This document shows, piece after piece, positions 7,176-41,258 of a stretch of 64,000 nucleotides of DNA (the first letter of the stretch is position 1; each line of letters opens with the position of its first letter). Both the position numbers and the translations under genes were made by a program. The notes beneath the pieces are model-generated. The model had not been told where the DNA came from. It saw nothing but the letters and a program-made list of their open reading frames with translations, and searched no databases. This DNA comes from Oopsacas minuta (lineage: Eukaryota > Animalia > Porifera): the NCBI GenBank assembly GCA_024704765.1, contig JAKMXF010000188.1, forward strand, positions 367,015 to 431,014. The letters run 5' to 3'.

Positions 7176-10100
7176 ATGAAGATTTCTTTCCAGGTACATA
7201 ATAATATTTAGTTCTCAAATGTTTTTATGTATTTAGCGTTATACTAATATTTATTTGTTATTTTATTTTTGTAGATAATATTGCTATTGGGAATATCACT
7301 TGGTAAGTAGAGAGGTATCGATTTTTGGTTTCCAAATTACTGGGCCACATAGGTGCAACAATCTCCGGGTTTGGGTAGACGAAGACGACATCAAGCCCGC
7401 CCGTCTTATGCATTTTTATTATTGTTGGAGCTTAATTTGGTGGGGACGTGACCACCCAAAATAGCTCCTGTTTCGCCTATGTTATTTATAGAATTTCCAT
7501 GAATTATTATCCCGGCTCATTATGTTTAATTCTTTATACATCTCTAGGCTCTCTTGCCAACGCTGATATTTGTACTGCGGATTGGTTATTAGAGGATTAC
7601 CTAAGTGATAGTTGTTATTCCTGCAAAGATGATAATGAATTACTGAGCTGGTGCACTAGTTACCTGTAAGTTTACTTAATAAATGAGTATCCAAGTTCAA
7701 ATTATAATTATTGCTCATTTTTTAAAGATTCTGTATACATTATTAGTTATCTCTAACTGGGTAGGAGAGAACAACCTAAATATGTTAATTTTGTGTCTAT
7801 AGAAATGGCGACAATATTCCTCCTATCAAGTGTTGTGAAGGGTACGGATATGACTATCAAGATATCATGCCTACAGAAGGTTCTACAAACCTGGGCTCTG
7901 ACTACCAAGATATCATGCCTACAGAAGGTTCTACAAACCTGGGCTCTGACTACCAAGATATCATGCCTACAGAAGGTTCTACAAACCTGGGCTCTGACTA
8001 CAGAGATATCATGCCTATAGAAGGTTCTACAGATGATGACATAGTCTATGATTTCGGATATGAATACTCTGATATAGAAGATGATGAGAGCTTCCCTTAT
8101 GATTTTGAAGATTATGAGTATTATGATAGTGATAGTGATAGTGACAGTGATAGTGATGACGAGTCCTTTATAGGATTTGATCTCATGGATGATGAGCTAG
8201 CAGGCCCTATTACTAATGAAGTATTGTTACCACTGTAAGTTTATTATTATGTTATCTAAGTGCTGCTTTTCTGGTATATACCGTCAGGGTCACTTGATGT
8301 GAACCAAGTCTGTGGTCCCTATAAATTTTTCCCAAATAGGATTTGTATTAATATTTTGTGAAGTCTCTTTATTATGAATAATATAGCCGTTGCCTGATTG
8401 CCATGGCACTACTCATTACGCTATAACAGGTCGCCGGGCTGAGGCCTAAAATACTTCTTAAGTAGGAATAAGACCTAAAACATTCTGAACTGCTATCCAA
8501 ATACTGTACTGAAATGTTCATATTCTCCGCTAAGGCCAATCTAGTTAGATAATCCAAGAAAATATCCATTCCATAACATCCTTATTGAGTTATAAAGACT
8601 TTCAGCAAAACGTTGGGACCTCAAGGAAAGTTTTGGCCAACTCCCAGGCTCCAGATCCAACGCTAATGCCATGGAAAGTCATCAATAAATTCAAAAGAGT
8701 ACAAATACGAGATACCACATAATGTGTAAAATATATCTATTCAATGGATATTAGTTTTAGGCCTTATTCCTACTTCAACTTTGGGTCTTATTCCGCATCC
8801 CCCTACAACCTATTCATATCTCTGTACGCTATTGAATATAGTTATTGTATAGTTGACTCTCCCGGCTATATGATGTTTGTTGTGTCTTGTTATCATTTAT
8901 TAGTAATCTTTTATCATAATCTATTCTCACTCATTATTTGTATTTTTCGGGTGAGAATACCACACAATGCTTTATCAGATCAATCTTTATACTTCTGCTT
9001 GTAGAAATTTGTTCTATGGTAACCCAGCCATTGTCATACCAAAATAGTAGAAATATATGAATATAATCTGAGTAATCCTTTGCCATATGTAATAGGTAAT
9101 GATTCCCTCTCTCCTTTTAATAATGTCAATTCCATACTTATAGTATTCATAAACATTTTGTACTATGTATAAAATTTTACACATATTATATAGCATAATC
9201 TCATGGATACAAGTAAATACCTTCATGTTAATAATAATTAGACATATCATAATTCCCTACATAGCTCAGTAGTTATAACTAATTTGATTTATTAATTAAT
9301 GACTGCCTCCTGTCATTCTTACAGAATACTTGTAATTCCTAAGATTGCTTCATATGTTAAGCATGGTATTCTCATAATTATAGATTAATTATAATATGCT
9401 ATTAAGCTAATACAGTAGAACATCTATAAGTTCAAATGTAAATGCGCTTCAACCAGATTTTTTAGCCAATATGTATAGCCACTTCCTCCAACGGACGACT
9501 GTTTTTTAACAAAATTTATAAGAAATTTCTTCACAGAAACCCAAAGATTTCAAATCATCATAGCGATAAATACATGTTTTTCTAAATTTAGCACAAAAAT
9601 TGATAATTATGAAGATTATTCGTAGAATTCCTACTTATAGAGTAAGTATCAATGGTATGAGGCATAATTTTCTCCAAAGTATCCCCATTCTCCGCTTAAA
9701 GAGGTTCTTTTCTATGGAAATGAATATAGGTGGACGAAAAATGCCCCTGCTTATAGAGGTTCCCCATTTATAGAGATTGCACTGTACTCAGTATATATTA
9801 GATAATAAATAATACATACGTGTTCTTTCTTTGTTTGGATTTAGCGTATACAGGTGCTTTCAGTGCTTAAATATTGATTAACCATAATATAAACTCTCCT
9901 TAGATTGTGACACTACCAAAATTATAAATAATATTCCAATAATGTTTTTTTCTTAGAAATACAATAGAAAGTTAATTTAATTCTACATAAATACCTTAGT
10001 AATTATCAAAGTTAGGTATGATTAAATATCCGAATTCCAAAGTTCAAGCTAGTCGGTGAAATAGGATATTTTTACGAGAATCACTATTAATACAAGTTCA

Positions 10101-13100
10101 CTGTATTTACATTATTTTGGAGGTGTAACACTTATTCAGGTTCAGAAACATTATTGGTTTATTTCATTCGAATAAATATTTCAACCAAAAGTTGAAAATA
10201 TTGTCAAAACGTATTCATTACTAGAGGGGCAGTTGCATAACTATACCAAGGAGAGGGTGGAGTAAATTGAGACAGTTCCATCTTTATTGCATTTTGAATA
10301 GTTGCAACCTCTAGAACAATGTCATCTAATTTTTTGAATAGATTGTGGTTTGTTTATAAATGAAGCCTACAAAGAAAGATTCGTACTGTTCAGCATCAAT
10401 TTCTTATTCTGCTTCTGGATTCATGATCTTCTAACTTCTCATTAAGAATCCGTAATTTCGAGCTCATCTGGATGAAAATATAAAACATTCACAACTTAAT
10501 CAGGAATACATTACTTAGAACTACGTATACAGGTTCTAAGTTACTTTATAATCAATCATAGACTGAAATGACCGAATTTAGGTAGAAATTTGAATGATTC
10601 ATAACAGGAATAAGTAGTTACTAATGATATGGCATATTAATGTGAATAGTTGTCTATAATTATATGATTTCTCACCCTGGATGCAACCTTGTACGTATTC
10701 TGATAAATATTCACTAACTCTAGCAGCTGTATTCACAAAAGTTACGCACTAAGCTCGAAATCAACTTTCTTGTGAATAAGGTAGCTTAACACTACACATA
10801 ACGAATATATCACATTACTTTCACAATGTTTCATCCCCAATTATATTTTCAGTTTTATTCAACCCCTCATATTTCCTGAATATTTATCTTAATGTTATAT
10901 ATAGACCTAGTGCTCTTGAGGAAATTGATTCTATCACAATTACAACTCCTAGTCTGGTAGATTTCACAGCTTCCCCTGACTGCTTCCTAGCTAGCATCCT
11001 AGGTAACAACTATGTAGACTCTTATCAGAATGCTAAGCAGAAATGTAATAGTGATTTGAAGGAACAGCTGAGGCTAGAGTTTAACTCTCTCCTTGAACAA
11101 GTTTCTGAGACTAAAGGCAACTTTAAAACTTTCTTACAGCAATACTCCGACGAACTAACGGAAGATGAGATACAAGGTATGTTATCTTATAATTAGAATA
11201 TTTCCAATTAAATATACGAAGGGCACTCGAAAAGTTTTGACGTTGACCGACATATCAGATAGTAATCATAAATTTGACTATTACATTTTTTCAAAATACT
11301 CTCCCTGACAATCTATACATTTTTTCATTTTGGTAAACCAATTATCAAAACATTTTTTCCACTCTTCTTTGGGTATGTCTCCGATCGCTTGGAAAAGTGC
11401 CCCTCTCAACTCCTCATTAGTCGAAAATCTCCTCCCACGTAATTGATCTTTGAGTCTAGGGAACAACCAGAGTCGCAAGGGGCTAAATCAGGACTGTAGG
11501 GTGGGTAAGGTAATGTTTTGAGTCCAGAATTTTCCAAAAACTCACGAGTTCTGAATGCCGTATGCGATGATGCATTATCATGATGAAGAAGAATTCCTCT
11601 AATGCCTGTCTTCTCCCGCTGTGACTCAATTGCTGTGATGACTTTGGGTAGGCACACTGTAGTGTACCAGTCGGCAGTAACAGTCTTTCTATCCTCGAGA
11701 GCAACAGCTTCGACAAACCCACTAGATCTGAAAAAAATCGCCCACATTTGTTTCCCAACAGATCTAGCCCTCCGCACTTTGGTTGGAGGTGGGGCATCTT
11801 CTTCAACCCACTCCTTTGACATTCGCTTTGTTTCTGGATCATAACGGTATATCCATGTCTCATCACCTGTAAGGATCTCAGAAACAGCTCTTGAACTTCC
11901 ATTAGCAAACCTTTTGAGCATAATCTTTGCAAAAGTCTATGCGGGATATTCTTTGCTGTAAGTTCAAAGAATGGGGGATCCATCGGGCACACAACTTCCT
12001 GACACAAAGCTCTTTGTGCAAAATGATATTAATTGTCCCCGATGATAACTCGGTTTCATACTCTAACTGAGCGTACGTAATATGAGGATCTTTAGTAGTT
12101 AGATCTAGCATTTCGTTAACATTTTCTTCATTATGTGAAATATTCGGTCTTCCTGAACGAGGGGCATCTTCAAGAACAAAGTTTCCGTGAATAAATTCCC
12201 TGTACCATCGTTCAACTGTACTTAGAGAAGGAGCTAGATCCGGGAAATGTTCCTGTAAAGATTCATAGATTTTTACTCTTGTCTTCTGTTGTTTGAATAA
12301 GATCAAAATCATTGCTCGAAAATCACGTTTTGTGAGATCTGAGTTAGATTGAGATATTTTAGAAGCCATGAATACTAAAATTATCTAATTTATGAAAGTA
12401 GAAGAGATAAATGAATGAAAGTTTCAAAGTAAAGTAATAAAATATGTCTGAAAAGATGGATGCGGAAAAATATCCGACAGATTAATAGTTTCATATCAAA
12501 CGGCAAAACTTTTCGAGTGCCCCTCGTACATGACATCATTTATACGAATGTCACCACTGTACAGAACCACGTTACCCCGAATTAAGGGAATTGTTAAACT
12601 TGTTTGAATGCTATATGCGAGCAACCGGCTTACCCCTGTTATTTTAGCAATTTTGTTTGTTGACTAAAAGTGAGTCTATCTATTAATTATTTAATACAAT
12701 TATATCTGATAATAAACTGCCAATAGAAATAGTATTAGTCAACCGCTCAGCTTCGTTATACTGTCATTTTAGAGAACTTAGCCGAATCCTTTTTAATGGA
12801 TTATATGGAAGAAAATTTCGGTTATCAGAGACAAGCACACCCACTTCTTACCCCAGAGTACGTCTTAAGCTTAAAACTTACTACACCTTTGTTGTATTTA
12901 ACTTACCATTACTGATTATCACATCTATATTGTATAGAAGTAAAAGCTCAGATGGCAGACCTTGACAGACAGGTGATTGAGCGTACTCAACGCATGAGAG
13001 ATCAGCTAATGAATCCTAACTGCACCAAGTACACTAATCTAGAGAAAGATAGATCTATTATATCAGCTGCTGAGGCATATGAGAGAGTACTGGATGTGGA

Positions 13101-15109
13101 TGAGATACAGGCTGGTAATGACATTTTCTGTTTAGAGAACTATCTTAGGAAGCTACAGACTAAACTAGAAGAGTGTCAGTATGAGGTTATGACTCTATAC
13201 AGTCAGCTGATTGATGAGGACAAGACTGATTTAATATTCGAGAAGATGTGTAGGAGTGGAGATGTTCAGCGTGTTAAAGATATAGTCGACGAGTAAGTTA
13301 TAATTGCTCGCATGTCAGAAATTTCGCGTCTCTAAATTGGGAAAACCTTAACCACATGTAGAAGTAGACCAGTGATGCTTTGCTAAAAAACGAAGTGGGT
13401 GAGCTCCCCATTGAAGTTAGCAATTTCTTAGAAAAACTTGGTGAAAACAGCCCCCAGGATAGAAGTTGGGGGCGTACCCGCCCTTCCCATACTGAGTAGA
13501 ACTGTTTTTGAATTGAAATTTATATTATTTGCTTTGGGGATTTACTTTTAGGAAAGAAATAAGTACCGAGCAGGAAATTCTGAATAATGGGTTAGTAGGA
13601 TTTGTTATGATATGGTGCTAGTTCATAGCTTCCTACTCATGTACCATTTGTACTTTATTGTATACCTGTGAAGTTAGTCTATTAGCAATTCGTAATTTGC
13701 ACTAATTTCCCTTAATATAAATTGTTTACTAATTGAGGATTCATTTTAATCCAAATTCCACTCCATGTCCCTGAATACACCTAACTTTTAGGCGAATACT
13801 TTTCTCATAGGCGAACACTACTGTACTATCCATTTACATTATATTTATTCTACAGATTCTTTACTGAGGTTTCTTACGAATCTATCTATCCTACACCTGT
13901 GATTGAGCCTATGTATCCTGAGGAACCGATGGATACAGTTGAGGAGATGGAGCAGAGACGATTGGAGCTTAACCGAGAGTTAGAACAGCTACAACAAGAA
14001 CTCGACCAAGCAGTTTCAGAGAAACAAATAATTTTCAACAAATATGTTGAAGTTTCGAATCGTCATATTTACGTAGAAGAGAGAATAAATGAACTTCTAG
14101 AAAGTGGAAATATTGATTCAGACGAGGGGAACGACTTGAGGAACGAGTTGCAAGAATTGCAAGCTGATCAAAATAATCTGAAATCTGAGCTTGCCATCAT
14201 TAAAGCACTAATTAGGGAGATTGAAGAGGAGATGAATGCTCTACTGTCTGAAGAAATACAATTGGAAATACTACGTAAGTCACAAACACTATAATTTATT
14301 CCGAAATCAGGCTACATTAGGCCCCATTTTATAGACTCACATCGCCCTCGTACAGTTGACTTTATTAAGTGGAGTCTACTGATACAGGATTAGATTTATA
14401 AACAAAAGCACAATTACGTATATCTCTCTTGCCTGCCTTGTTTATATTCACAGCTTGCCTAATTATTGTAGGCTACTATTACGTATATATTATAATTTGA
14501 AACAATCTTAACGGTCTAAACGTCCTGTCGTTATATCAGAAAAATACTCATACTAGCGATAATTATTAAATCTGTATGTTTTGCAAATTCTAAATTGATT
14601 CTTGTTTAGTTGGTGTGATGCCTGATCAGCCTGAAGAGCCTACAACAGAGTCTCCCATTGATGAATTCATAGACAATTTAGGTCCTGGCCCTGTCCAGTT
14701 TCAAGATGTAACCACTGAGAGTTCAGAAGTAGAGGAAGTATTTACAAATATTCCAACTGAAGAGGTAATCTACATAATTGATGATTATGATTTCCCTACT
14801 GAGACACCACACTTCGTCATAAATGATGATAGATTGTTTGAGTCAGAGGAAGAGGAAGGAGAACATCATGGAAAACTGTCAAAATACCTGATTGGGGTAT
14901 CGATAGGCGTGCTCGCATTACTCGGGGTTCTAATGATGTCCTTGTGTATTCCCCTAGCTGTAGTCATGAACAGAAACAAAGGCAAGAAGGTGCCATACGA
15001 CAAAGCTTCTCTGGCAGAGAAAGATCCTGCCATACTCCTTAAACAGACAGGGTTTGAAAATCCTATCTACAAGTTCTATGTCGAGAACTCTAAGGGGACA
15101 ATAAACTAG
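7176..15109 (+). CDS. Amyloid precursor protein (APP)-family-like type I membrane protein; exons 7176-7193, 7275-7302, 7548-7665, 7803-8234, 10905-11176, 12938-13292, 13856-14274, 14610-15109
   Basis: All introns are GT-AG and phase-compatible. The product has a signal peptide MKISFQIILLLGISLGSLANA, a short Cys-rich segment, acidic repeats and a (DS)n tract, and an E2-like helical region (YQNAKQK..., AAEAYERVL..., CLENYLRKLQ). These are followed by a coiled coil, a TM LIGVSIGVLALLG... with GxxxG, the basic NRNKGKK, and the tail KQTGFENPIYKFY, matching APP QNGYENPTYKFF. Confidence 0.75.
7852..8031 (+). repeat. Coding minisatellite, 48-bp unit x about 3.75 (DYQDIMPTEGSTNLGS)
   Basis: Units start at 7852, 7900, 7948 and 7996 (partial), inside exon 4 of the APP-like gene. 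Confidence 0.95.
9413..9784. mobile_element. Tc1/pogo-type MITE (372 bp)
   Basis: Imperfect TIR CAGTAGAACATCTATAA / TTATAGAGATTGCACTG with TA on both sides; non-coding. Confidence 0.65.
11217..12526 (-). mobile_element. Full-length mariner (DD34D) with twice-frameshifted transposase, in an intron of the APP-like gene
   Basis: TIR CGAAGGGCACTCGAAAAGTTTT / AAAACTTTTCGAGTGCCCCTCG with TA TSD. ORF pieces 11902-12369 (HTH, WIPH), 11406-11921 (TGDETW, HHDNA, YSPDLAPCD) and 11281-11478. Confidence 0.95.
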
Positions 15110-16599
15110 AAAATACACTCTTTTAACTCTAAATATAAATTGTTAAAAATATTAATGTTATCTTTTGATAGAGAAGTAGTCTCCTCATTCTTGGCAAGTG
15201 ATCATATTGCAATGTTTCCCATTTTACCCTATCAATGTAATTATTTTAATGTGTATTGTATCTCTTGTGGAACTCATTTGGTCTTTGATATTTTTGAGGG
15301 AATTCATTATAATCAATCAATCATATGTCATGTGTATTACATTACTAGGTTTCTTTAACTAGATTATAATATTACTATATTAATTTGTCATCAATATGCT
15401 ATAATTAGGAATTAGATAATGGAAATATCATGCAGGTTAATGCAAGTACGAGGCCTTAACTGTACGTGTTTACTTTTGTTGGATCATGTTGCTTGGATGT
15501 TATTACAAATACTACAGGGATATATCCAGGTGGTAGATGCCATACATTCATCTTTTTATATTATCTCAATTTCACTTTTGTTTTACGTCCAGAGTCGATT
15601 GAGGGACTAGTAAGAGCTACAAACTTGAAATTTGGCATGTGGATGTAAATTTGTTGAACCAGAGTTGTAATCTGGTCAACTTTTCAAATCCGACCAGACC
15701 CTAACTCAAGTGTATATAATAACTCAAAATCCTCTAGGCCAGTAGTTCTTGCATTTCGTGACTCAATTATTCAATTTTCAATCCCTTGCGACTCCACCAA
15801 CGGTATCTTTCTGGATTTGAATCTGTTCCTATACATGCGCCTCACGCAACCAACCAACCAACCAAGCGCATTAGTAACATTAATATATCCATTAAAAGGA
15901 TTTTAAGTTACCAGAATTTAGGTCCAATTAAGGATTCGGATAAAATTTAATGTCATTAATGTTACTAACATTAATTAAGACCTCAAGAAAATTTCAGCCC
16001 CTCTGTTAAACCTCAGCTCCACTACATATGACCATATATGGCACTAGGACTTTAGAATTCTGTTTTAGATATATTCCTTTTGCATTTTACATAATTAATT
16101 CCGACAATTATAATGATATGACTGTAATTCACAATTCCAAAAGTTCGAAATGATCAAGATACAACATCGAACCCGGACACGACCCGAAAAAGCCGAACCC
16201 GATTCCAACTCTGCGTTGAACGTAGAACAAGCTTTAAAATTTGACTCCATCGTAATTCATAAGTATAGGGCGGGTGGCATGACGTCATCTTTGCCCACCC
16301 TGACTCATGAGCCTAGTTGCGACAATGAGCCGCGATATACATACAACCTATCACAGATTTATCTATATGCGGCTGTTTGTAACTTTGTATGTATTAAGTT
16401 TTATTGTAAATTAATTGTTTGGATTTAATTAGCATTTTGTACTTTTCCATTTTTATTTGCTCTCAAATCATAATCACGCATCTTATTATATGGAAAGACA
16501 GGTAAGGACGTCTCACCTTTTCTGTATTTACGATTTATCTAATTTCCATACGGTATACTTATCTTTACCATGGATTCTCTAATTAGCCCATAAATACCC

Positions 16600-18499: not shown

Positions 18500-21400
18500 A
18501 TGAGCTCTCGAGAAACCGGAAGTGGTTTCAACTGGAAACAAATCCTGATTGTGACAGCTCCCATTGCTCTCAGTCTTGCGGCAGTTGTCACTATTTATAT
18601 ATACTATTCACGAAAAAAACGGAAGGAAGGTAATCAGGATATCCACACCTCTGAGGATTTGAAGAAGGATAAGAAGACAACATCAGTTAGACCCCTCACC
18701 CCGGAGCAGAGCCAAGCTAACGAAGAGGTATGTATATTGTATTGTACAAGTATTAGATACAATGGATACAGTTTATATAAGGGTTGTTCAATTAACAATG
18801 AGACTTTTTTTTCATAATTAATATAGTAAACCTATACTTATCATAATTGATTATCAAATGTTTCGATAAATTCCCCCTTTAACTTTATACATCGTTTTCA
18901 TCGTTCTGGTAACTTTTCCAGCCCAGTGGTATAGAATTCTTTAGGAGTCCCTTTTTCCCACTGTTTTATTTCGTACTCCAGCCGTTTGAAATCCTCAAAT
19001 CTCTTCCCTCGAAAGGGTCTCTTCATCTCTCCAAACTGCCAGTAGTCGCTGGGAGCCAGGTCTGGGCTATACGGGGGATGAGGGAGGCATTCGAATCCTA
19101 AGTCGTCAATTGCAGCCATTGTCTTGGAGCTTACATGGGGGCCTTGCGTTGTCATGTTGCAGTAATGCGCCACGTGTCAACTTGCCTCGCCTTTCACGTT
19201 TAATCGCTTGACGCAATTCTTTCAACTCGTCAACGTAATAATCACTGTTTATGGTTGTCTTCTCAGGCAACCAGTCGAGGTGTATAATTCCTTCCCTATC
19301 CCAAAATACTGTTACCATTCTCTTCCCTGCTGATTTTGCGGCCTTTACCTTGATGGGTACAGGTTCATCACGTCTTTTCCACTGCTTCGATTGAGTTTTG
19401 CTCTCTGGTTCATAATAATGAAACCAAGTTTCATCCCCCGTTACTATACGATCCAAAAATTCTTCCTCTGCCTTGTATCTTGAAAGTAATTATTTGCTAA
19501 CTCTGAACCTTTCGCGTTTTTGTTCTTTTGAAAGAAGTTTTGGGACCCAACGCGCAATTACCTTCGACATTTCCAGATCTTCAGTGATAATCGAGTGTAG
19601 TGTGGCTTTTGATATACCTACCCTCTCTTCTAACTCTCGCAGGGCTATTCGTCTGTCCTCGTCCAAAATTGTTTGGACCCTCTCGATATTACTGCAGGTT
19701 TTTGAGGAAGTCGGACGACCTGGACGAGGGTCATCGTGGAGTTCCTCATCGTCATTATCAAAACGTTCGATCCATCTATATATGGTAGCTTTCGAAGGAC
19801 ATTCATTACCGAAAATATCCTGCATTTCACGAAGAATGTATGAGCCAGTCTTCCCCTTTTTCCACTTGTACCAAATTATTTGTCGTTTTCCTTCTTTGCT
19901 AAAATCCATTAGTTGAAAAAGGTCGAGTAAAGAGTATATTGCATAGAAGTTAGACAATCAAGTTAGGCTTGTAATCTGATATTAGGCTTAGAGCTGTATT
20001 TACTAGACTATGAATTCGATACATTAGTCTCATTACTTATTGAACAACCCTTGTAAGAACTTCAGGGTCATGAGGAGAAGCACAAGAGATCCTTGCTGTA
20101 TTGAACATACATATTATACTCATGTCTAAGTCAAGCTCGAAATAGGACAATTTTACATCAATGGACGTAAATACCTGTAAAATGATCAAGTATTATATAA
20201 ATTGCTCAAATTATGCTCATCGTTCTTATTCATGCGCCGTTTTTTAGTGCAGTTCCTATAGGGAGATGCCCTAATGGCATGGACGATGTGCGACGTCTAT
20301 ATGTCCTCACAGCCGTGCGAAATCTAGCCGATTCACATGAAAATTGGTATACATATACATTTGGAACGGTTATAAAAAGAACAAATCAAATAGCCCCGAG
20401 CTACACTACCAGTCTGTGGGCTGGACATTTTTAATAACACAAACAATAGTTAAACAGGGGGGACCAATTTCTGCAAAACAATGTGACTGTGATATACTTC
20501 TGTTGCTCTGCAATGAATTTACCTTGGAAGGCTCTAATCATTTAGCCTGCTTGCTATATTAAGCGCCGTCTTAAACCAATCATATTTATTCAATAATTTG
20601 ATTCAGAATAATGGCGTCCTGGACCTGAAACAGGTGGTTAAATTGCAGTTAACACAGCACTTCATAGATTCCACAAATAATTGACAAAAATGTTCCCCCT
20701 ACAAATCTGGCCCTCCATTAGTGATTACTTAATACACTTTAGACATAATAGTAGGCCATTCATACTTTTTGCTAATCCGAACAGTCCTGTGCCAATGAAA
20801 ACACTAACTGTTCGGATTAGTGAAATAGCACTAATCCAATGGAGAATTATCACCTCGCTAATCCGAACTATAAAACATGGAAGTCTGTTCTAGATATTGC
20901 AGGCTCCTCTTGGGTTGGCCAACTTGGCCTACTATTTAGTTAAAGCCTATTAAGTAATCACTAATGGGGGACCAATTTCTGCAAAAACATCGTGCCTAAC
21001 ATATGCTGAATGGTGCTATTCACGAATCTATTAATGTATCCTAATAACCAACATTGCTGCTATACAGACTGCAGCCATGTGGTAATGGAATCTAGGAGAT
21101 AGACAGAGTAGTCGAATAAATGTGTATTTGATCTTTCAGTGGACCTTTCTATAACAACAATTATACCAGTCAAGTGGACGATGCAGTATTTACAAATGTT
21201 GGTTACAATAACTTGAGTATTGTAATTATTGCAATACTAAGGTTTAAGAAAAGATATACACATACTGTTATTAATCGAATTAGTGTTGATAATAGTATGG
21301 CATCTAAAGATAATCTCCCTGACAAATCAAACGATCTGTTGTATATCAAGAAAGTTAAGGAAAAGAAAGGTATGTATTGTGGGTATAGAAGGGACTATTT

Positions 21401-24400
21401 AGCTCAGAACCTGTCAGAAATGGAAGAAGGACTTATCATTTGTAAGAATTGTACAGGAATAATGCGAGAAGCTTCTTTCTGTAGAGGAGATACTACTTGT
21501 TTGGTTTGTAGTGAAACTCCAAGACAACTCAATCCAGTAAAAACTGTGCAAAGTTCTATAGAAAATTTACAAATAAAATGTCCTCTCCTCAGAGATTGTT
21601 GTTGGAAGGGAAAATTGTCAGAAGCTGAGAAACATTTGGTAGAGTGTAAGGTATTCCTTATACAATGTAATAACTGCAAACAGATATTTCTGAGAGGAGA
21701 GAGTAAAGAGCATTGTAAAGATTTATGTCCAATGCGGATAATCAGTTGTCGTTATTGTAACAAAAAGGAAAAAGCAATAGACCAGGAAAAACATTTTGAT
21801 GTTTGCTCGAAATATCCGATTTCTTGTCCAAATAAATGTGGAGATAAGTTTCCGAGAGGTGTATTGTCTGAACACAGAGCGAAGTGTGAGTTAAAAGAGA
21901 TTAGCTGTCCCTTTTCAGAGTATGGATGTCAAGCAAAGTCTATGTTAAGAAGAGATCTCATAGCTCACAAGAAGGAGTATATCTTAGAACATACAGACAT
22001 GAGCTTAATTGAAATCAAACAACTTAATGAAGGAATACAGCAACTGAGAGAGGAAAATAATTCTTTAAAGAAGAAACAAACTGAAATCCAATGGGAAGCA
22101 AAGACAATGAAGCAACTTGATGGAGTTGAGTGGGAAATAAAGAATATAGATAAACTACCTGCTGAATCACAGATACAAGAAGGACCAGAGTTCTCTCTTA
22201 ACAACTACAAACTGAGAATATATTGTACTACTACTATAGTTAGGAGATACGGTGGGGAAAGATTAAAATTCTATCTCCAGAGGATTACTGGAGAATTTGA
22301 CAACATTTTAGGAGCAGCTATTATCACTAATTACAAAGTAATTATAGTTAACAAACAAGATTACACAAAATCTCATTATGAAGAAGGAAGACTGAATTAT
22401 CAGCTGAAGATAGGTGTAAACAGTAATGACATCTATCTTGAATCAACTTGGACAAGTTGCTTAACAGCTAACAAATCTTTGTTTATACGATTCTACTTTG
22501 ATGTTAACAATAGTGTAGATTTGAAAAGTATTAAGGCTTCCCTTGAAAATTATAGGGATCCCTTTCAGGTTCGTCCAATAATGCGGGGGTCCTTTTAACG
22601 GCTAAATACATGTTTAGTTCTGTTTAGACTGAATTTATTTGTAATTTTGTTTTTATTTCTACTAACTACATTTCTTAATTACTCAATACTTACAGTTCAG
22701 AACATTTTATATCTCTGTCTGTGTTATGCTATTAAATATATGTACATTTTATAAATTTACACTGATATACTCTACTATAGGAGGAAGCAGCTATGAAATG
22801 GCTGATGGAGAAGAAAGCAGAAGCTAACAGCTGTTTCACTAAGAAGGAGTACGATAGGGCAGCAGAGATATACACTGAGCTGATTAAAGATTGTCCTCCT
22901 CTACCAGGTCTCAGGATAGACCTGTCTAAGATATATCATAACAGAGCTGCTTCCTATGAAAAGATGGTCAGTTATTATATTACTATTAAATTGTTCGTGT
23001 ATTTCTTTCTATTAATGCTAATTTTATTTCTAGTACCATGGATAAGTTTAATAAATTTTCTTTGTTTCTTGAGTCACGGTTAATCGGGTCAGCTGGCCAG
23101 AAACAGACCCATACTAATAGTTGTTAAATTGCCCCGGTCGGGCCAACGCCTTTAATCCGCATAATAGGGTCAAAATGTCTGGTCCCGATGTACTATATTA
23201 AGTGTAGTCTACTTTACTTATTCTAAGCTTAGCACAATTGAGTGATCAACATGTTTTAACGAGATAGATAATATATTATGAGTTTATTTATACAGCGATG
23301 ATTGGTAATACCGATCATCGCTAGGAGTGTATAATCCTGCCGATCATCCCAATCATGTGATAATATGTATTATAAATAATACTGAATATTAACATTGGTA
23401 GAAGCCATACTACCTTACAGCAACATGACTAGTTTCTCATATGAAAATTGTTTGAATTTACAACTTGCAATTGGCTTATTGTCTGAATATAAAATTGTAT
23501 GTATCTTTTTATTAATATAAGTAGTATGTATTATGATAAAGGAGAATAACAAGGCCTTTCAATTTTCTCTATCTATTCTCTTAAAAATTTGATAAATTTC
23601 AAGGATACACCTAAAGTTTGAATATGAATTATATGATAGCTATAATCTCTCCTCAGAATATCAATTCCAACCAGAATCACCTGGTTATTCAAATTCCCCG
23701 AATTCGATAATGAACAGGTATACCCACAAGTGGACTCTGACTTAAATTTGTGTAGATTGCCACCGATAAATGTTCATCAATATTCAAGTGTAAGTTTACA
23801 TCTAATTTCACCGTCTAATTCTGATCCAATTCAAAGAGAAGAAGATTTCATACTTGAAACGAGCGAAACAATATCATATCCTGATCCATCGATGGAAATA
23901 TTCATCCAGATAAGCTCAGGGCTGTAGAAGATGTTATACGGGTTAGAACAATCGATTTACCGAAGGATTTGTATAGGTAGGCAGATTGGATCATGGGACC
24001 CATGTTACGTTGACCCTTTGAATAACCTGTCCATAAAATGCTAGGACCAAGACTACTATAATAAAGGATTGTAGGCTGCCACTTGGGTCCATATGTTTTC
24101 TTGATATCTCCTAATCCACTAAACTGAGAAAGCTGTAACCATTGTGACTTAATCATGAAGATAACCATAAATGGTCATTTTTAAGGTTACGCAATAAGCT
24201 CAAGAGAAATCATATCAAAATGTATTACAATGGCATAGTAAGTGGGTCTATACTATGAATAGGATATTCTGATTTCACAATTTCTTCCCGATTTTCCAAT
24301 TATAATTGGATATTCATAAAAATGTGTCATCCATGGTCCCTACTTTAACTCGGGAATGAACCAACTTTATCACGACAATTTATATATTTTGTATAAAAAT

Positions 24401-30400: not shown

Positions 30401-33400
30401 ATCAAACAATAACATAAACATCTCATACACACATATTGAAAGTTTAGCCATTTCTGAACAGTCACGTTTTACCTAATAATCTTGTTGGACTATTGGTCTG
30501 TTGATAGCCACTTTAGTATAATTTCGATCCTACTCTCTAGCACTATCAGGGGATTCAGGCCTACTAATCTTTGAATGTCCTAAAGCAGGTTAATTATGAA
30601 AAGCTAAATTTCAAATATTTTTATGTATTCTAGTATAGAATATCATAATTTTAATTATACAAATTGGATTGCAACTCTATTAATTAAAGAGAAATTCTTC
30701 GAATTATTCCAGAATTATCGAACACAGGAGTACAGGACAATTCTATATTTACTTATTAGTCTGTCATTTTTCAACAAACTCCCCGTCATTAAGACCGACC
30801 AGTATTGTAGATGTTAATTATCAAATCTATGGTCCAATATAATAATTAAATTTATATGATTTATTTATAACGATTACTCTGTATTGAAAACATAACACAA
30901 TTAAGGGTACTCTCAATTCATATGATTGTTCAGGTAAATAATAACCAAATACAATAATCTATTAATATTAGTTCTGATATCATACCTAACCAGCAAACAC
31001 ATAGCTCTCTATCTCACACTCATCCACACCTCTCTTTATCTTGAAATATCCTCCCAGATTCCCCCAGTTACTGCCCCACGAGTTAGCTATGATCCAATAA
31101 TCTACTCCGTCATCACTACCCCACCCCACCATCTTAACCGCATGTCCCCCAACTGATCTCCCATACACATGACTATATACCCCAGACTTGTAGTGTAGAA
31201 AATCTGAATACACTTGTAGCCCTGCTTCTACTGAACCATACATGTATATTTCCTTCTGTATCGTAGCTACGTCACTGGTTAGTTGGTATGCTCCTATTGA
31301 GGTGTAGAAGGTAGGTTCCTTGCTCTTGTTGCTCGGACAGTAATCTCCGTACCAGTTCAGCTGACACATCCCTGAAAAACCGAACACTTTAGTTAGGAAT
31401 GAGTATTTATAGCAGTCACTCTCTACAGCTCCGATATTTTGCAAATACTTCCAGGTGCTCAGCAGATATCCACCTTCACATCCATTGCTAGCTGTGTCAC
31501 AAGCAATCAGCTGTTGAGTAGAGAGCTCTACTGATACTCTACCACCACTTCTGATACATACCCTGTCTCCTAGTGCCTCAACAGCTGCGAAGGCCCAGCA
31601 GCCTCCACAGTGTCCCTGAGACCGTATCCTCGTCACACACTCTGGCCACTTGTATCTGATATCAAACTGAGTAGGGACATCTGAATCATTAGGATAATCC
31701 TCTATACTTTTAATTTCTACATCTCTACTAGAGTTTGTAGGTAGAATAGTACCAGCTAGATAACTAGCCTCTGCTAGAGTTAAGTCTTCAAACCCTTCAT
31801 TAATCCCTGCTACCCATTCACTCTGTGCTCTGTTAACAACTGATACAATATCATTACTGCTTAGTATAACATGCTCTACGCTAGGATGCCATCTAGTGTA
31901 CGGAATAGCTGTAATAGATATAGTACTGAGGATTAGTAATAATAAGGTTATTGCTGTTTTCATCTCTACTACTCTGTTATTGATGGTGTTGTTGTTTATT
32001 TATACTAATTTTTGCTTAATTGCCTATTAATTACTGCTTGTTGTTAATCTGGAGTATCTTATCAACTCGAGTTGTCCAGCATGATGAATGGTTTCACTCG
32101 CGGATCAACACTACTACTATTTCTAATATAATCCTTAATTATAGCTGTATGCTACAGAAGCTGTATTTATGTCTCGTGTAGCATGATGTGTTGTTGTAGA
32201 TATTAGTGTATATTTGTTTTTACAGCAAGTTATTATATTTGGAACTTCCATTTAAATATTGTGTATTTGTAGGTACTCATGGATGTTCAAGAAGTGAGAG
32301 AGGCTTTAGAATATCTCGAGAAGGCTATAGCTATGGATCCGGATAACGGTATGCTGTATGTGTATCGTGCTCAGTGTAAACTAGCTAGTAAAGGAGGATC
32401 TGTTCAGCAGGGATTAGTTGAGAATAACCCTCATATGATGGAAGCTACTAATCAAGCTTTAGAAGAGCTAGAGTATGCTATTAAGATTGATAATCAGTGT
32501 AGTATAGCAATGGAGGTGCTTTCTACCATGTATTCACAAAAGTGAGTTATTTAAATTTTTATATTATATTATTTTGGTATACAGCAGAACTCGTTAAAAT
32601 ATGTACCTCTCTGAAACCCGAAATAAGTGCGTACTACTCCCCAATACTGACCCTCATTTATGCCTAGGGAACTGTCTAGATTGTATTGGTTTAGTTTATA
32701 AAGTATGTATACTTTTGCAGTACTATCTAGCATTTAATTAAATAATTATGTATTTATTCGTACTTAAATGATGGTAAACAAATCAATACATAGATAGAAC
32801 TATTATACTGTTTTCAAATCTGGAGCAATTTCTGATGGTATTGACCCTTCCTCCTCTACTTCTATCCCAAAGGTGTTTATCAATTCTTCTTTGTTAGAGA
32901 ATATCTTAACACAATTTGTTCTGTAGCATGCTAGAATAATGTTATTGTCTCTGTATAGACATAATATATTTTCGTCCATTTCCTGACTCTATGAGAATAA
33001 ATCAAAAATCTGAATAAGGATATTAATTCCTGTCAATACTTCCATTCCCTGTGTATCTTGTGGAAATTGAACTTTATCGGTGATGAAAGAATGGAAGGTT
33101 AGATCTGAATTCAAACATTGTATATGATGTAATTATGCTCAATTGAAAACAGCAACCGCTTTAGGGAAAAGAAATTCCAGTTCCCCAGATCCAATTACTG
33201 ACCATAAGAATTTACCACCTGAAGAGTATACATTGAGAGAATCAGCATAGCATAGCATAGCATAGCATTGATTCACATAGACTTTATTCATAACAACGCA
33301 AATACCAAAAGGTTCATTCATCTTTTCATTGAATGTGAATAAGAATTGTAAAGATTCGATGAAGATTTGTATTCTATTATTTACGGAGTCACAATCGTCA

Positions 33401-35144: not shown

Positions 35145-38100
35145 ATGGATAGTAGAAATAGATTATCGGTAAGTGTTATTATGCTAGTCTTTTATTTATT
35201 GGTAGTTTAATGTTTATAACTGTTCCTAAACTTTTGTTTAGATTTTAATGATTGTTCTGTTGCTGATCATCAGTGAGTTATTTCTTATCTTGTTCAGTTG
35301 TTCTTATTAAGTTAAAAAGTTCAGATTATAGTGTTATTATTTGCTATTACTATTTTACCCATTCAAAGACTGTTAGTTGTTAAGTAGTATGATTGGTTAT
35401 CTCCATAATCCGTGAGATTATCAAAGTTTCTTTATATACATAATTATTCCTAATTATCAATTGCCATTTATGAAGCTCGGATAATATCATCATACATCCT
35501 GGCAACATAGCTGACGCCAGAATAAATGTATTGTATATTTGTAGAGTAACAAATTATCAACCACAAGCAAGCTTTGCTTGCTTGCACTGCGCGGCTCATG
35601 AACACTTGGTGTCTCCACGTGGCACCCTTTGGGTGACTCTTGTATTCTTAATGATTAAATAATACACGTTAACCGATAAACAACTCAAAATAGCTGTTCT
35701 ATAGGCCACAACACTCGTCAATTTTAACTGGACAAAACTATTCAGCCACTGCTAGAATTCCATACAAATGTTACTAATCTCGTCTATCCTTGGGGGAGGC
35801 CAATAAAGTAAAACTGTATGATTTATATCCTATGTCAAATTTGCATCTGCGTATTTAAAAACCTCGGTATACAGACTTCATATCTAGATACAAAATGATA
35901 ATTTTTGGCATAATTTGTCAATATTATTTCTTCCCTTGTAGAACGTGAAATATTGCGTCTTTCATTTCACAGAGAATATGTGAAATGATCGCTAGATACT
36001 TTTTATACAATTTGTTAGACAAAGGTTGGCTCGTTCTAGAGTTTCAGAGACCAGGGATGATTGATATTCATAAAAGGGGGCGCAGCATTTGTTAGAATTT
36101 CTACATATGTTTGCACTTGTTAGAATGGGGTTCCTTACTAAATGAATATGAGTGAGTTTAATAGACTGAAAACACAACAATAACTTGAATTAGAATTAAT
36201 TAATAAATATTTGAAATGTGTTCTCAATATCTGAGCGACATATAGGGCACGGCTGGCCTAGATCTTTAATCCTCTGGCTGCATCTGGTACAACAACAAGC
36301 GTGCCTGCAAGGCATGAATATCCAAGTGGCTGTACGTTGACCCAAACAAACAATGCATTTGTTTTCTTTTGTAGGCCCTTCATCTGCGGATTCGTTGTCC
36401 GAAAATTCGCTATCGCTCGAGGTCAGAGTGCAGTGAAAATATGATTTTCCAATAGTGTGGCTGATAGCTTCCAGGAACTGCCAAGGATTGTAATCTCCGT
36501 TACTTAACTTTTGCTTCAAAGTACACCTACGTTCAAAGTTCATTAAATTATTCTTTTTGGGGGGCCTACTAATTTCTCTGCCTTGGCACAAACGACCGAC
36601 ATCATTGTCCACATCCTGAATTATGTTGTTTAGAACTCCAATAAAACTCCATATCCTAGGATGACTTGTACGTATATTTGACTTGAGTTTTGAATGGTAA
36701 CTTTCGGAACCGTTGTTGGTTGTGATATTTATGTCATTAATGGAGAGTTCCTCCGGGGAAATTTGATTTATCCACCTCCTCTTGAAGTATTTCTTCAGCT
36801 TTTCGAGTTTTATTCCCTCAGAGTTTTCTGGCACTCGAATAAAATTAAAAGTAGGAATAATTAACGCGGCTGGCAAAAATGGGATAGACATCAGTTGTTT
36901 AATATAATTTTCAATTTCTTGCTTGTTACGGTATCCTTCTACAAGTCCAAGCTTTTGGGTTTTTGCCCAAATACGCTGGGTGAAATGAAACCAGCATCCA
37001 TAAATCTTTACCTGGGGATAAGTTTCTCTAAACGCATTTCGAGAGGCGTCTTCCCAATCTGACATTGAGGCCAGAGGTCGAAAGTGAGGAATATTCTGCG
37101 AAATGCTTTCCAGTATAGCTTGATATAGCTGTTGGTTTTTCCCGGTCAATAAGTAGTGTATCGCAGGTAGAGTGTGCCTTCCCACTGAAATGAAAATAGT
37201 CCACAACTGATAAAATTGAATGGGTACAGTAAAGAATGTCCCATCGTATTGTATGTTGGTAATTTGTGATAAAAAATCTTTCATCGGCTCTGAAAAGAAT
37301 ACTGCACCAAGTTCATTGCCAACAGAGACGCTAAATTTGTAATACTTCCCGAAGTTTGTAGTTGTTATCATGTCACTAAATTCCAAAGCTGTCTGAGGTA
37401 TCTTAGGTTCTAGAGTTTTTCTCGCCCGAAACATCGTGGATTCGCATTCTGAAAAAGATATTTCACATGCTCGTGGATCATCTCTTGTCACATCATCGAA
37501 AACCTTCCGGAGATTCATTTGCGAGTTTCTTGCAACTGTCATACATTTTGTTTTGAGAGCAAATAATTCAGTTTTATATGCCTCACTGTCATGATTATGC
37601 GAATTTAAGGGAGTAATCAGATCTCTTTCACGATTGAGTTTGCATGTTCCTTTGCAACCACCTCTGAATAAAGCACACCTTAGGTAAACAAAATTGACAT
37701 TTGATTTAGAAAGAATGTATTTGTTTCCATCTGACGTAGTGAAAACCTTTCCGACAGTACGTTTGTATTCCTCCAATGTATATTCCATCAAAATAATTGG
37801 TTGTAAATATATACCAGAGACAAAAAAATGTTATTAAATACGATTCAGATGGGGAACTTGTTTGGTTCCTCCAGAGAGATCAAATTCAGTGACATACAAC
37901 AATATTTTTGGCTGATATGATGAAGGCGTTGGAGTTGTGCATTCAACACTACATCATGAATGAACCATTCTAACAAGTGCAAACATATGAAAAACAATTC
38001 TAACAAGTGCAAACATATGAGAAAAACAATTCTAACAAGTGCAACCATATGAAAAACCATTCTAACAAGTGCAACCATATGAAAAACCATTCTAACAAGT

Positions 38101-41100
38101 GCAAACATATGAAAAACCATTCTAACAAGTGCAAACATATGAAAAACCATTCTAACAAGTGCAAACATATGAAAAACCATTCTAACAAGTGCAAACATAT
38201 GATAAACCATTCTAACAAGTGCAAACATATGAAAAACCATTCTAACAAGTGCAAACATATGAAAAAACCATTCTAACAAGTGCAAACATATGAAAAACCA
38301 TTCTAACAAGTGCAAACTGTAGAAATTCTAACAAATGACTACTTCTAAATTCTAACAAATGCATGCACCCCTCATAAAAATGTGTAATCCCTGGTCTCTA
38401 CTGTAACTCAAGAACTAGCCACTTGGTATTATTTTGTATGAAAATATTTATTGATCATTTCATATAATAATAATAATAATAATAATCTATATTATTAAAT
38501 CTCAATTGTTGTTTGTTTGTCTGTTTGTTTGTCCGTTGTCAAGGAAAGGAATTGCGGTATGCAATTTTAAATTGTCGCTTAACTATGTATTTATTGTGTT
38601 TATCAAGGAAATAAATAGAATTCAATAAAACTTCACTAAATATATCGAACATGCTGAATCCGATTTTCACACTTTTGGATTAATCATATGTAAATTTATT
38701 TGTTGTTTTTATGAATATAAAGTAAACAAATTTAAAAATTGAGGTAGAATCCTGCACTCAACGACTATACTGGGTAATCGGGTATGCTGAGTCTGAATAT
38801 TGTGAAAAACATCAATACTATTAAATCTCAATTGTTGTTCGCTGTTTGTTTGTCCGTTGAATACCTCGGGGCGCAATGCGCCGAGTTCATCGCGAAGCGA
38901 CAAGCCAAAGGCTCGTCATAATAATAATAATAATAATAATAATAAATTGTGTAACTAAATAATTTGTGAAATGAAATCATAGGCGCCGAACCCAGAGGTG
39001 CTGGGGGGCTCGAGCCACCCCTCGTTTGGGTTACAGCCCCATAGAGCTAATACAAAATATATGTGTGAGCTCCCCTGGATCGTTGAAAGTTCGGCGTCCC
39101 TAATATTTCATCATATAATGGTTGATAATAATTTGTTGCTCTACAAATATACAGTACATTTATTCGCGCAGAAATGCGTCATTTCTGCAATATAGAACTC
39201 ACATAGAATTAGTTATATCGGCCAACATATCCCTAGTCCAAAATCCACAAGTGACTGTTTGCCCTTATGTAAAGTAGGCTATGTCAGAACTCATACGTGC
39301 ACACCAAGGGACTTATTTTTATAATTCTATATGTCACTTCCTTGTACTGTAGAGTACTCTGTATTTTGGTGATGCTGTAAACTTCAAATGTTATAATGAA
39401 TAGTCTTGCCCTGACATTATATCAGTAGGTCTTGATTATACCAATAGTTTTGAAATCCATTCATTCCTTTTCAGAACATGTCATATTCTTATTCCATTCT
39501 ACAGGTTGTCTACTGGTATCTATATCAGGTGCAGATAACAATCCTAATATTAATACTCAACTCTCTTCTGACAGTAATACCAATGGTGATGAATCTAACA
39601 TGGTACCATATAGTAATACCAATGGTGATGAATCTAACATGGTACCATATAGTAATACCAATGGTGATGAATCTAACATGGTACCATATAGTAATACCAA
39701 TGGTGATGAATCTAACATGGTGCCATACAGTAATACCAATGGTGATGAATCTAACATGGTACCATATAGTAATACCAATGGTGATGAATCTAACATGGTA
39801 CCATACAGTAATACCAATGGTGATGAATCTAACATGGTATCATATACTAATAATGCAGTTTCTAACGACCAAGGGATGGCAGATTACGATGCTGACAGGG
39901 ACTATATGGAATCCAACTCAGATACAAATAGCAATAATATGAACGGAGGATATACTGGTATAATTTTGTGATTTGTAATTTATGTGGAGATAATATACTG
40001 ACTGAAATATGGGGCTGTATTCCCGCTATACGAGAATCGAGATTTTCCTTTGCAAAATATTGATATACGTATGTACGAATTATTCTGAATATTCTGTACT
40101 TAACCTCTGGATATCGATTTTGAATACCTTCCCCATGCAATGAATTCCTCTAACCGGGCCGGATGTATGTAAATCATAATCAAAATCAAATCCATTTTCC
40201 ACAAGACCGATAACCCTATCCAATCCATGATTTCCTAATTGGCGGAATTGGTAATGCATACACTTATTTGTAATTTAATCATATGAAATACCATAACTGG
40301 ACATATCAAAATATATCATTCAATTTAGTGACTACAAATTTGTTTATCCTTTTTCGATTGATACAATTTGGAAATGTAACACCTGCATTCTAAGTAATTA
40401 AGAAATTCATATTCAATGTAAATCAAAGTAGCAGTATGGAGAAATACAATCATTTAATAATATAGATTATTGAGTTATGTGTTGTTAGGATCAGAAACAA
40501 GTCATGACATGTCACAAGTAGAGCATGACATAAGTGAGCTCTCTAACGAGCTACATAATCTTGAGTCTGAAGTATCACAACAAAACAGAGAGGGATCTCA
40601 ACCCTCTTCTACTCTGCTACAGAGAATGGAGGCAGAGATACAGCAAGCAGAATCTGAACTTAGACTAGTTCAAAATGAGTTACAGAGATTACAAGATTCT
40701 GAATCTACATTAGATGGGAGGGTTAGTGAGATATCTAGTAGTGAAAACATGCTTGAAAATACTCTAATAGAGAAGATGAGGCGGATAGAAGAAGAATTAC
40801 GTAGGTTACAGAATATTGACAATATTGTCCACACGAATACTGATACTATGGGGAGTAATAGGGGAGATACAAATACAAATTTTGATTCTAATGCAGACTA
40901 CGATTTGGATGCTGATTACGATCCTAATTCCAATTCAAATAGTAATATGTTTCAACCATTCAACATCCCTAATACACAATCCAATTCAGATACTCCAGAT
41001 TATGAGAATGACGTGTATGAAGCTGATATGGACTATTATCCTGCTGGACAATCTCCTGAGGATGATGGGCCTGAATTCCAAGCTCTACTAGCACAGAATA

Positions 41101-41258
41101 AATACCAGGGAAAGATCGTTGGTATAGTATTTGCATCTCTCCTAGCATTAATACTAACTCTAAGTATTGCGTTTGGTTGTATTATCAATGCTATTCTGTT
41201 TGTTAAGAGAAAGCGAGCTGGAAGCAAAGCTGAGTCTGCTTTACTGAATTCTAAATAA
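35145..41258 (+). CDS. Uncharacterised type I membrane protein (acidic 13-aa repeats, coiled coil, TM); exons 35145-35168, 35242-35272, 39505-39957, 40489-41258
   Basis: Phase-compatible GT-AG exons give the signal peptide MDSRNRLSILMIVLLLIISCLLVSISGA. This is followed by (SNTNGDESNMVPY)x7, a heptad-rich region of about 100 aa, an Asp/Asn/Tyr-rich spacer, the TM IVGIVFASLLALILTLSIAFGCIINAILFV and the tail KRKRAGSKAESALLNSK. Confidence 0.7.
36196..37791 (-). CDS. MULE transposase (FLYWCH-like + DDE) with C-terminal C3HC4 RING finger, intact 531-aa ORF
   Basis: YLRC...CKG...HNH; YDGTF; SDWEDA...YGCWFHFTQRIW; TNNGSESYHSKLK; C-terminal CIVC-x12-CRH-x3-CTRC-x10-CPICR. Confidence 0.9.
   Translation of the reverse strand: MMEYTLEEYKRTVGKVFTTSDGNKYILSKSNVNFVYLRCALFRGGCKGTCKLNRERDLITPLNSHNHDSEAYKTELFALKTKCMTVARNSQMNLRKVFDDVTRDDPRACEISFSECESTMFRARKTLEPKIPQTALEFSDMITTTNFGKYYKFSVSVGNELGAVFFSEPMKDFLSQITNIQYDGTFFTVPIQFYQLWTIFISVGRHTLPAIHYLLTGKNQQLYQAILESISQNIPHFRPLASMSDWEDASRNAFRETYPQVKIYGCWFHFTQRIWAKTQKLGLVEGYRNKQEIENYIKQLMSIPFLPAALIIPTFNFIRVPENSEGIKLEKLKKYFKRRWINQISPEELSINDINITTNNGSESYHSKLKSNIRTSHPRIWSFIGVLNNIIQDVDNDVGRLCQGREISRPPKKNNLMNFERRCTLKQKLSNGDYNPWQFLEAISHTIGKSYFHCTLTSSDSEFSDNESADEGPTKENKCIVCLGQRTATWIFMPCRHACCCTRCSQRIKDLGQPCPICRSDIENTFQIFIN
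37963..38317. repeat. Tandem array, about 30-bp unit x12 (AAAAACCATTCTAACAAGTGCAAACATATG), at the 5' end of the MULE
   Basis: Twelve copies of TTCTAACAAGTGCAA counted, with no spacers between them. One reverse-complement copy of the unit lies in the opposite TIR (about 36100-36130). Confidence 0.95.
38485..38916 (-). mobile_element. Helitron/HINE-like non-autonomous repeat (composite short+long unit), flanked by (TAA)n
   Basis: Reverse complement of the 52315-52882 family, with two 3'-type ends (GACAAACAAAC...TTGAGATTTAATAATA). Confidence 0.55.
39573..39845 (+). repeat. Coding minisatellite, 39-bp unit x7 (SNTNGDESNMVPY)
   Basis: AGTAATACCAATGGTGATGAATCTAACATGGTACCATAT repeated seven times with few substitutions. 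Confidence 0.95.

Follow-up and report, generated by a model that had tools for sequence, protein, structure and literature searches.

In the genome of the glass sponge Oopsacas minuta (contig JAKMXF010000188.1, assembly GCA_024704765.1), a stretch of 64,000 nucleotides (positions 367,015 to 431,014 of the forward strand, hereafter the window) carries LOD99_2066, a real and expressed gene so far annotated only as "hypothetical". Its product is a single-pass membrane protein whose cytoplasmic tail is, by its sequence and within the limits of a short match, specifically like that of APP. A first reading of this DNA, made without database searches (the sequence-only reading), had seen in it a divergent APP-family member: the APP-like tail and the absence of the E1 domain are upheld by our data, the E2 domain finds no support in sequence, and outside the tail no likeness to APP could be demonstrated. 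We regard LOD99_2066 as a receptor with an APP-type tail; that it truly belongs to the APP family, as a highly divergent member, appears to us an evenly balanced proposition.

The tail (residues 668–713, 46 amino acids) follows a transmembrane (TM) segment at residues ~641–667 that contains GVSIG; the GxxxG pattern is found in 5 of 7 orthologs—"seven" standing here and below for Oopsacas plus six others, all compared as separate exon pieces. The tail is the most conserved part of the protein: 24 of its 46 positions are invariant, including KKVPY and the entire QTGFENPIYKFY. The motif GFENPIYKFY, which lies nine residues before the C-terminus, is identical in 7/7, Phe at the place of the first motif Tyr included, exactly as had been read from the Oopsacas sequence. 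PF10515 (APP_amyloid) is the sole Pfam family matching all seven last exons, with a best ortholog E-value of 8.4e-4 and, for Oopsacas itself, 15.1–16.9 bits (E 0.034–0.009). Profiles were also run against the PDB, in a set of 177,635 distinct sequences that excludes peptides under 20 residues. With the profile of TM plus tail, built from the seven last exons, the top ten are APP C99/AICD chains only (best E 8.4e-5), and the alignment to APP has one 4-residue gap over 65 positions. With the tail only, twelve APP AICD entries come first (best E 2.6e-3), 8 residues being identical and 5 similar over 14 in an alignment of LKQTGFENPIYKFY with APP MQQNGYENPTYKFF; no integrin, LDLR-family or other NPxY protein is present in the tail results from this set without peptides under 20 residues. 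The sequence-only reading had considered that the tail could group with unrelated receptors: both the Pfam and the PDB profiles favour APP instead.

LOD99_2066 consists of eight exons on the + strand, at positions 7176–15109 of the window (Table 1). AG/GT borders are found throughout, and the exon lengths total 2142 nt, that is 713 codons and a stop. The locus product is KAI6655567.1, "hypothetical protein LOD99_2066", 713 aa, from Oopsacas minuta (Hexactinellida). This database record, returned by an exhaustive HMMER search with a 117-aa exon piece, is the full-length protein analysed here; the in-frame translations of the exons all occur in it without mismatch, and together they tile residues 1–713, one residue short per split codon. 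The gene proposed earlier stands at the stated coordinates, with canonical borders, and the host, for which a sponge had been only supposed, is indeed one, of the class Hexactinellida. The DNA of the window is AT-rich (~35% G+C).

The locus is present in four public sequencing runs of one sample. In three of them the depth stays level from exon to intron, the picture given by DNA; the fourth (X4, of unrecorded kind) has an RNA-like pattern, with a depth of tens of thousands on 12940–13290, 13857–14275 and 14610–15130, and of 0–30 in introns. The X4 comparison took in the last three exons, the 5' part with its intronic transposon lying outside the compared stretch. Over the exons compared, this RNA-like run bears out the gene model, for which a confirmation by RNA had been suggested: depth is confined to exons, and X4 contigs carry the last two splice joints, 13290>13856 and 14274>14610 (GT..AG). 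The open frame 12773–12857 was considered as a further exon and rejected: it has no in-frame join to the next exon, no counterpart in the orthologs, and is missing from the annotated protein. In X4, the depth over 12770–12854 is ~50, about 1000-fold under that of the exons. One low-depth X4 contig (49.5, against ~100,000 on the exon) displays TA for the expected GA at the 13290>13856 joint, which would read as a stop codon; it probably reflects either an error or a variant of low frequency.

Table 1. Positions in the window of the LOD99_2066 exons, of the tail motif and of a neighbouring protease gene
Feature	Position	Strand	Content
Exon 1	7176-7193	+	Start codon and first 6 signal-peptide residues; exact match to residues 1-6; GT donor
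Exon 2 (micro-exon, 28 nt)	7275-7302	+	Hydrophobic core of the signal peptide; exact match to residues 7-15; AG/GT borders
Exon 3	7548-7665	+	Signal-peptide cleavage region and first four Cys of the 6-Cys mini-domain; residues 17-54
Exon 4	7803-8234	+	CC pair closing the Cys mini-domain, 48-nt tandem repeats (7851-8031), Asp/Ser/Glu-rich acidic tract; residues 56-198
Exon 5	10905-11176	+	N-terminal half of the helical ectodomain, with two of its six invariant Cys; residues 200-289; joins the 12938 exon directly
Exon 6	12938-13292	+	C-terminal half of the helical ectodomain, with the other four invariant Cys; residues 291-407
Exon 7	13856-14274	+	Linker and ~120-residue coiled-coil segment; residues 409-547
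Exon 8	14610-15109	+	Acidic juxtamembrane stalk, TM (about 14888-14968), cytoplasmic tail (14969-15106), stop; residues 549-713
GFENPIYKFY motif codons	15050-15079	+	Residues 695-704; APP-type PTB-docking/endocytosis motif (PTB, phosphotyrosine-binding)
Cathepsin-B-like cysteine protease, single exon	30986-31963	-	Peptidase_C1, E 1.3e-58

A search with the last exon found six relatives, at 40–52% identity, on long ENA contigs. All six loci share the same exon series: Cys, acidic, two helical (90 and 117 codons), coiled-coil and TM-tail. Exon 5 (90 aa) is 52–76% identical in the six orthologs, exon 6 (117 aa) is gap-free across the seven species, and the mean column identity reaches 82% in the tail versus 69–71% in the helical exons. 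The exon plan is conserved, with purifying selection, in the seven genomes. Two other searches, one by words from the C-terminal part of the complete protein, the other of JGI metagenomes with the tail alignment, matched only LOD99_2066 itself in the first case and nothing in the second.

The surroundings of the orthologs suggest from which organisms they come. A cathepsin-B-like gene lies downstream, on the opposite strand, in at least two of the six ortholog loci, and also in the window. At the most divergent ortholog locus this neighbour is about 71–74% identical to the Oopsacas copy, and its identity to named proteins of other organisms, a homoscleromorph sponge included, does not exceed 46%. 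As it is far closer to Oopsacas than to other organisms, the ortholog genomes form a clade with Oopsacas, and we infer that the six are those of other glass sponges. In addition, a single-exon Death-domain gene (~565–577 aa) stands 4–8 kb upstream of the ortholog in all six other genomes; none was found within 7 kb upstream of LOD99_2066 in the window.

The ectodomain begins, after the signal peptide MKISFQIILLLGISLGSLANA (cleavage before D), with a segment of ~43 residues (~24–66) that carries six Cys and not five as first counted, at positions 24, 38, 41, 51, 65 and 66 (C-x13-C-x2-C-x9-C-x13-CC). All six are kept in 6/6 orthologs, and the seven species have C, W, Y, D, CY, C and WC in common. 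AlphaFold2 (AF2) models this piece as a small two-helix unit of ~40 residues, with a mean predicted local distance difference test score (pLDDT) of 74, for which Foldseek finds no PDB match. Then come, over residues ~70–200, a tandem repeat of period 48 nt x 3.8 (16-residue repeats) in exon 4 and a DS/E-rich acidic tract: residues 101–200 contain 32–34% Asp+Glu and almost no basic residues, and acidic tracts are also seen in the orthologs. Residues ~225–415 are all-helical; the AF2 model of 195–415 has six helices (pLDDT 74, predicted template-modelling score 0.53), and six Cys of this domain of ~200 aa are invariant in the seven species. A coiled coil at residues ~430–545 (exon 7), for which Pfam returns only weak matches to coiled-coil families, and an acidic stalk at ~550–640 lead to the membrane. 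The acidic tract, the extra coiled coil and the GxxxG-bearing TM listed by the sequence-only reading are thus all in place, and the order of the modules—acidic tract, helical domain of ~200 aa, stalk, TM, tail of ~46 aa—parallels that of APP.

In the Oopsacas stalk, nine residues before the TM, we noticed the string HHGKL (residues ~632–636, about 14860–14880 in the window). It resembles HHQKL at the alpha-secretase site of human A-beta. Only its first His and its basic character are kept in the six orthologs, so that the likeness is probably due to chance.

What could bind such a tail in a sponge? The Oopsacas genome contains a Mint/X11-like gene, encoding a PID followed by a PDZ domain (best PDB match APBA1, E 2.5e-23; its PTB domain is split by an intron), an ARH/LDLRAP1-like gene (best PDB match 3so6, E 6.4e-23), GULP/Numb-like genes and a Shc-like gene that combines PID and SH2. 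In a survey that was not exhaustive, the PID loci tested were GULP/Numb-, ARH-, Mint- and Shc-like only, and none was identified as Fe65. The search for PTB adaptors that the sequence-only reading had recommended is thus positive for a Mint/X11-like gene, with the ARH-, GULP/Numb- and Shc-like genes besides, and not for Fe65 among these loci; that for gamma-secretase finds parts of it, presenilin, nicastrin and Aph-1 being encoded, together with several ADAM-type metalloproteases. BACE has been reported missing from sponges (PMC11117577).

The complex between the single-exon ARH-like PTB domain and tail residues 668–713 was predicted in three runs. It scores 0.75, against 0.22 for the best control; in calibration, 51 of 78 solved complexes attain that mark, as do 2 of 108 mismatched pairs. 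Contacts agree between the runs to at least 78%, with a partner pLDDT of at least 49. The confident interface involves tail residues 694–701 and 703–705 (T-G-F-E-N-P-I-Y and F-Y-V) and, on the PTB side, the beta-5 strand (94–102) and the C-terminal helix (139–153), i.e. the canonical mode. This model supports the behaviour of the tail as an NPxY ligand of PTB domains, not its descent from APP. We consider it quite probable that the tail acts as a docking site for PTB adaptors and as an endocytosis signal.

These features together suggest how the protein might work. LOD99_2066, which is expressed and shared by the glass sponges compared, has the build of a type I surface glycoprotein. Outside the cell it would expose a small cap held by disulfides, a tract of acidic repeats, a disulfide-stapled helical domain of ~200 residues and an acidic stalk; the coiled coil would probably make it oligomerise. 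Inside the cell, the invariant LKQTGFENPIYKFY.E stretch would work like the APP intracellular domain: as a docking strand for PTB adaptors, through which the protein would enter clathrin-dependent endocytosis and trafficking. The candidate adaptors are the ARH/LDLRAP1-, Mint/X11-, GULP/Numb- and Shc-like proteins of the sponge. Adaptor binding would follow the mode seen in the model, endocytosis may proceed through the tail, and shedding of LOD99_2066 or its cleavage by gamma-secretase may occur.

Kinship with APP has nevertheless to be weighed against a series of unfavourable observations, the first of which concern the ectodomain. For E1, at E<=10, the exons and the whole protein have no match to PF02177 (APP_N) or PF12924 (copper-binding). 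The lack of E1 had already been noted by the sequence-only reading, and the N-terminal piece indeed folds as a tiny helical domain without PDB match; PF02177 matches nowhere in the whole Oopsacas genome read in six frames. For E2, PF12925 (APP_E2) gives no match at E<=10 on the exons, on joined residues 195–415 or 195–560, or on 13 ortholog pieces—the profile comparison advised earlier is thus negative for every piece tried—and ortholog profiles return no APP E2 from the PDB. PF12925 is also without match in the Oopsacas genome, and no canonical APP domain was found in the assembly. Moreover, the six invariant Cys set the helical domain apart from APP E2 which, to our knowledge, is devoid of disulfides. 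The comparison of structures is more ambiguous: Foldseek against the PDB yields nothing at E<=1e-3 for the helical-domain or the N-terminal model, and E2 entries of APP, APLP1 and APLP2 recur in its weak rows (E 0.4–1.1, template-modelling score 0.2–0.35, for a model of pLDDT 74). The modelled fold is compatible with E2 and does not demonstrate it. Of the "E2-like helical bundle" proposed earlier, the six helices remain; the label, which neither PF12925 nor the PDB profiles sustain, owes its survival to a weak likeness of fold, the AF2 and Foldseek comparison reaching the APP-family E2 entries at those E-values only. That the helical domain is a true E2 homolog seems to us unlikely.

The other unfavourable observations concern the tail and the distribution of the protein. 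All PF10515 matches stay under the 27-bit Pfam gathering score, so that the comparison with APP_amyloid, also advised earlier, succeeds in singling out one family in 7/7 and fails on the level of every score. The APP-specific signal is a single stretch of about 14 residues. In it, Phe at the first aromatic position produces an FxNPxY core, the endocytosis signal of LDLR type, and part of the motif flank is not specific of APP, LRP1 also having NPTYKMY; on the PDB side the LDLR control is incomplete, as short tail peptides of the LDLR family fall below the 20-residue limit of the set. The predicted complex may simply reproduce PTB-NPxY structures that have already been solved, and it does not separate a ligand of APP type from one of LDLR type. 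The neighbours of the C-terminal part in the ESM language model are generic single-pass proteins (0.82), the ESM Atlas being uninformative both by features and by shape. Lastly, 1.84 billion representatives, searched exhaustively by HMMER for the 117-aa helical exon, yielded only KAI6655567.1 itself and one ortholog fragment.

These points could be read as the signature of convergence: LOD99_2066 would be a membrane protein specific to glass sponges and unrelated to APP, whose FxNPxY signal evolved independently or from a generic ancestor. Binding to like PTB pockets would have produced the likeness to GYENPTYKFF, and the ectodomain would be a lineage-specific disulfide-bonded bundle. To this we give a little less than an even chance. 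The lack of E1 and of any E2 sequence signal, an E2 fold match in the noise range, relatives restricted to seven closely allied genomes, an LDLR-like Phe and a similarity limited to about 14 residues all go in this direction; so does the gene at 35145–41258 of the window, which has a like gross design with neither sequence similarity nor motif, and thus indicates that such an architecture arises readily in the Oopsacas genome. However, the match extends beyond NPxY, to Q (-8), G (-6), E (-4), K-F-aromatic (+1 to +3) and E (+5), none of which varies in the seven species. The length of the tail and the position of the motif near the C-terminus also agree with APP, no non-APP protein ranks over APP in the Pfam or PDB searches, and the order of the ectodomain modules parallels that of APP. 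We place common ancestry of LOD99_2066 with APP at, or just short of, an even chance.

The tail could also come from another family of NPxY receptors such as LDLR/LRP, grafted on an unrelated ectodomain by exon shuffling or left as a remnant. The fit of the FENPIY core to the FxNPxY consensus, the grouping of stalk, TM and tail within one exon and the ARH/LDLRAP1-like adaptor predicted to dock the motif are what one would expect of such a graft. We nevertheless hold it for improbable: LDL-A, EGF and YWTD domains are absent from the whole protein (Pfam, E<=10), a tail search of the Oopsacas genome disclosed no second locus with a related tail, and the flanks of the motif fit APP better. Besides, the FxNPxY motif of LDLR is close to the membrane rather than to the C-terminus. 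Finally, that the frames do not form one gene, or form a pseudogene, is hardly credible: the low-depth X4 contig with TA at the 13290>13856 joint would agree with it, against eight exons all in frame with canonical splice sites, a very high exon-only coverage in X4 and an exon plan conserved under purifying selection in seven genomes.

If LOD99_2066 is the APP counterpart of sponges, what its lineage retained would be the TM-tail module, perhaps together with a helical ectodomain of E2 type, E1 having been either never acquired or lost. A possible scenario, which we advance as tentative, is that the TM-tail module existed before nerves, along with its PTB adaptors (Mint/X11, ARH, GULP/Numb), in the ancestor that sponges share with the other animals; the ancestral protein would have had an acidic tract and an E2-type helical ectodomain but not E1, the latter being added later on the way to placozoans, cnidarians and bilaterians. 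Homology would move the origin of the APP tail/PTB-adaptor module to the base of animals, and would open its pre-neuronal job—receptor trafficking, possibly regulated cleavage—to testing in an animal that has neither neurons nor synapses. Convergence, for its part, would offer a natural experiment on the residues that a PTB pocket of Mint or ARH type demands.

The window contains other elements. A decayed transposon of mariner/Mos1 type lies on the minus strand at 11280–12370, inside the intron 11176–12938 of LOD99_2066; its transposase is split between an open reading frame (ORF) with HTH_48 (11905–12369) and an out-of-frame DDE_3/Transposase_1 ORF (11409–11921). A similar element, intact-looking, is found near one of the orthologs (18677–19738 of that locus). 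The gene at 35145–41258 (+) has a micro-exon signal peptide and 51-nt tandem repeats, followed in the list of its features by a coiled coil, a TM and a short tail without NPxY; it was examined as a paralog of LOD99_2066 and rejected, with a BLASTP E of 4 and no detectable similarity. Its large intron harbours a MULE-type element and a 30-nt minisatellite. A TRAF-like adaptor gene is located at 21174–22598 (+), with a 474-aa frame containing TRAF-type zinc fingers and a MATH domain.

Compared with the APP family as a whole (APP, APLP1, APLP2, Drosophila APPL, C. elegans APL-1 and the cnidarian APP-likes), LOD99_2066 has the same type I topology, a single TM and a tail of ~46 residues which is, there too, the most conserved part, with G-[YF]-E-N-P-[TI]-Y-K-F-[FY]-x-E near the C-terminus (nine residues follow the motif, and five in APP). 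The context is also the same, a Mint/X11-like adaptor and parts of gamma-secretase being encoded in the Oopsacas genome. The differences are nonetheless substantial. LOD99_2066 has no E1 (GFLD and CuBD) and no PF12925 signal, and has instead six invariant Cys in its helical domain, an N-terminal 6-Cys helical cap and a coiled coil of ~120 residues. In the motif, Phe replaces the first Tyr and Ile the Thr; the remaining tail (VTPEER region, YTSI) cannot be aligned and, unlike in APP, stalk, TM and tail are in one exon. With LDLR/LRP and ARH, the sponge system shares a motif, FENPIY, that fits FxNPxY, an encoded ARH-like PTB protein and the predicted lodging of the motif in the canonical PTB groove; it differs from them by the lack of LDL-A, EGF and beta-propeller, and by motif flanks and a C-terminal position that are APP-like.

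Relatives of APP are reported in Hydra and Nematostella (PMC3660159), and in all examined animals but ctenophores, those of placozoans being without YENPTY (PMC11405698). The oldest have been placed in cnidarians and placozoans, sponges being unreported (PMC3660159, PMC11405698); the latter were excluded from the APP analysis of PMC11405698, though they have Mint. Our search of the full-text literature found no report of a sponge APP-like protein. The placozoan homologues offer a comparison: like LOD99_2066, they belong to early-branching nerve-less animals and have a partial set of APP features. But they are its mirror image, being recognised as APP homologues without the canonical YENPTY, whereas the sponge protein keeps the motif without a recognisable APP ectodomain.

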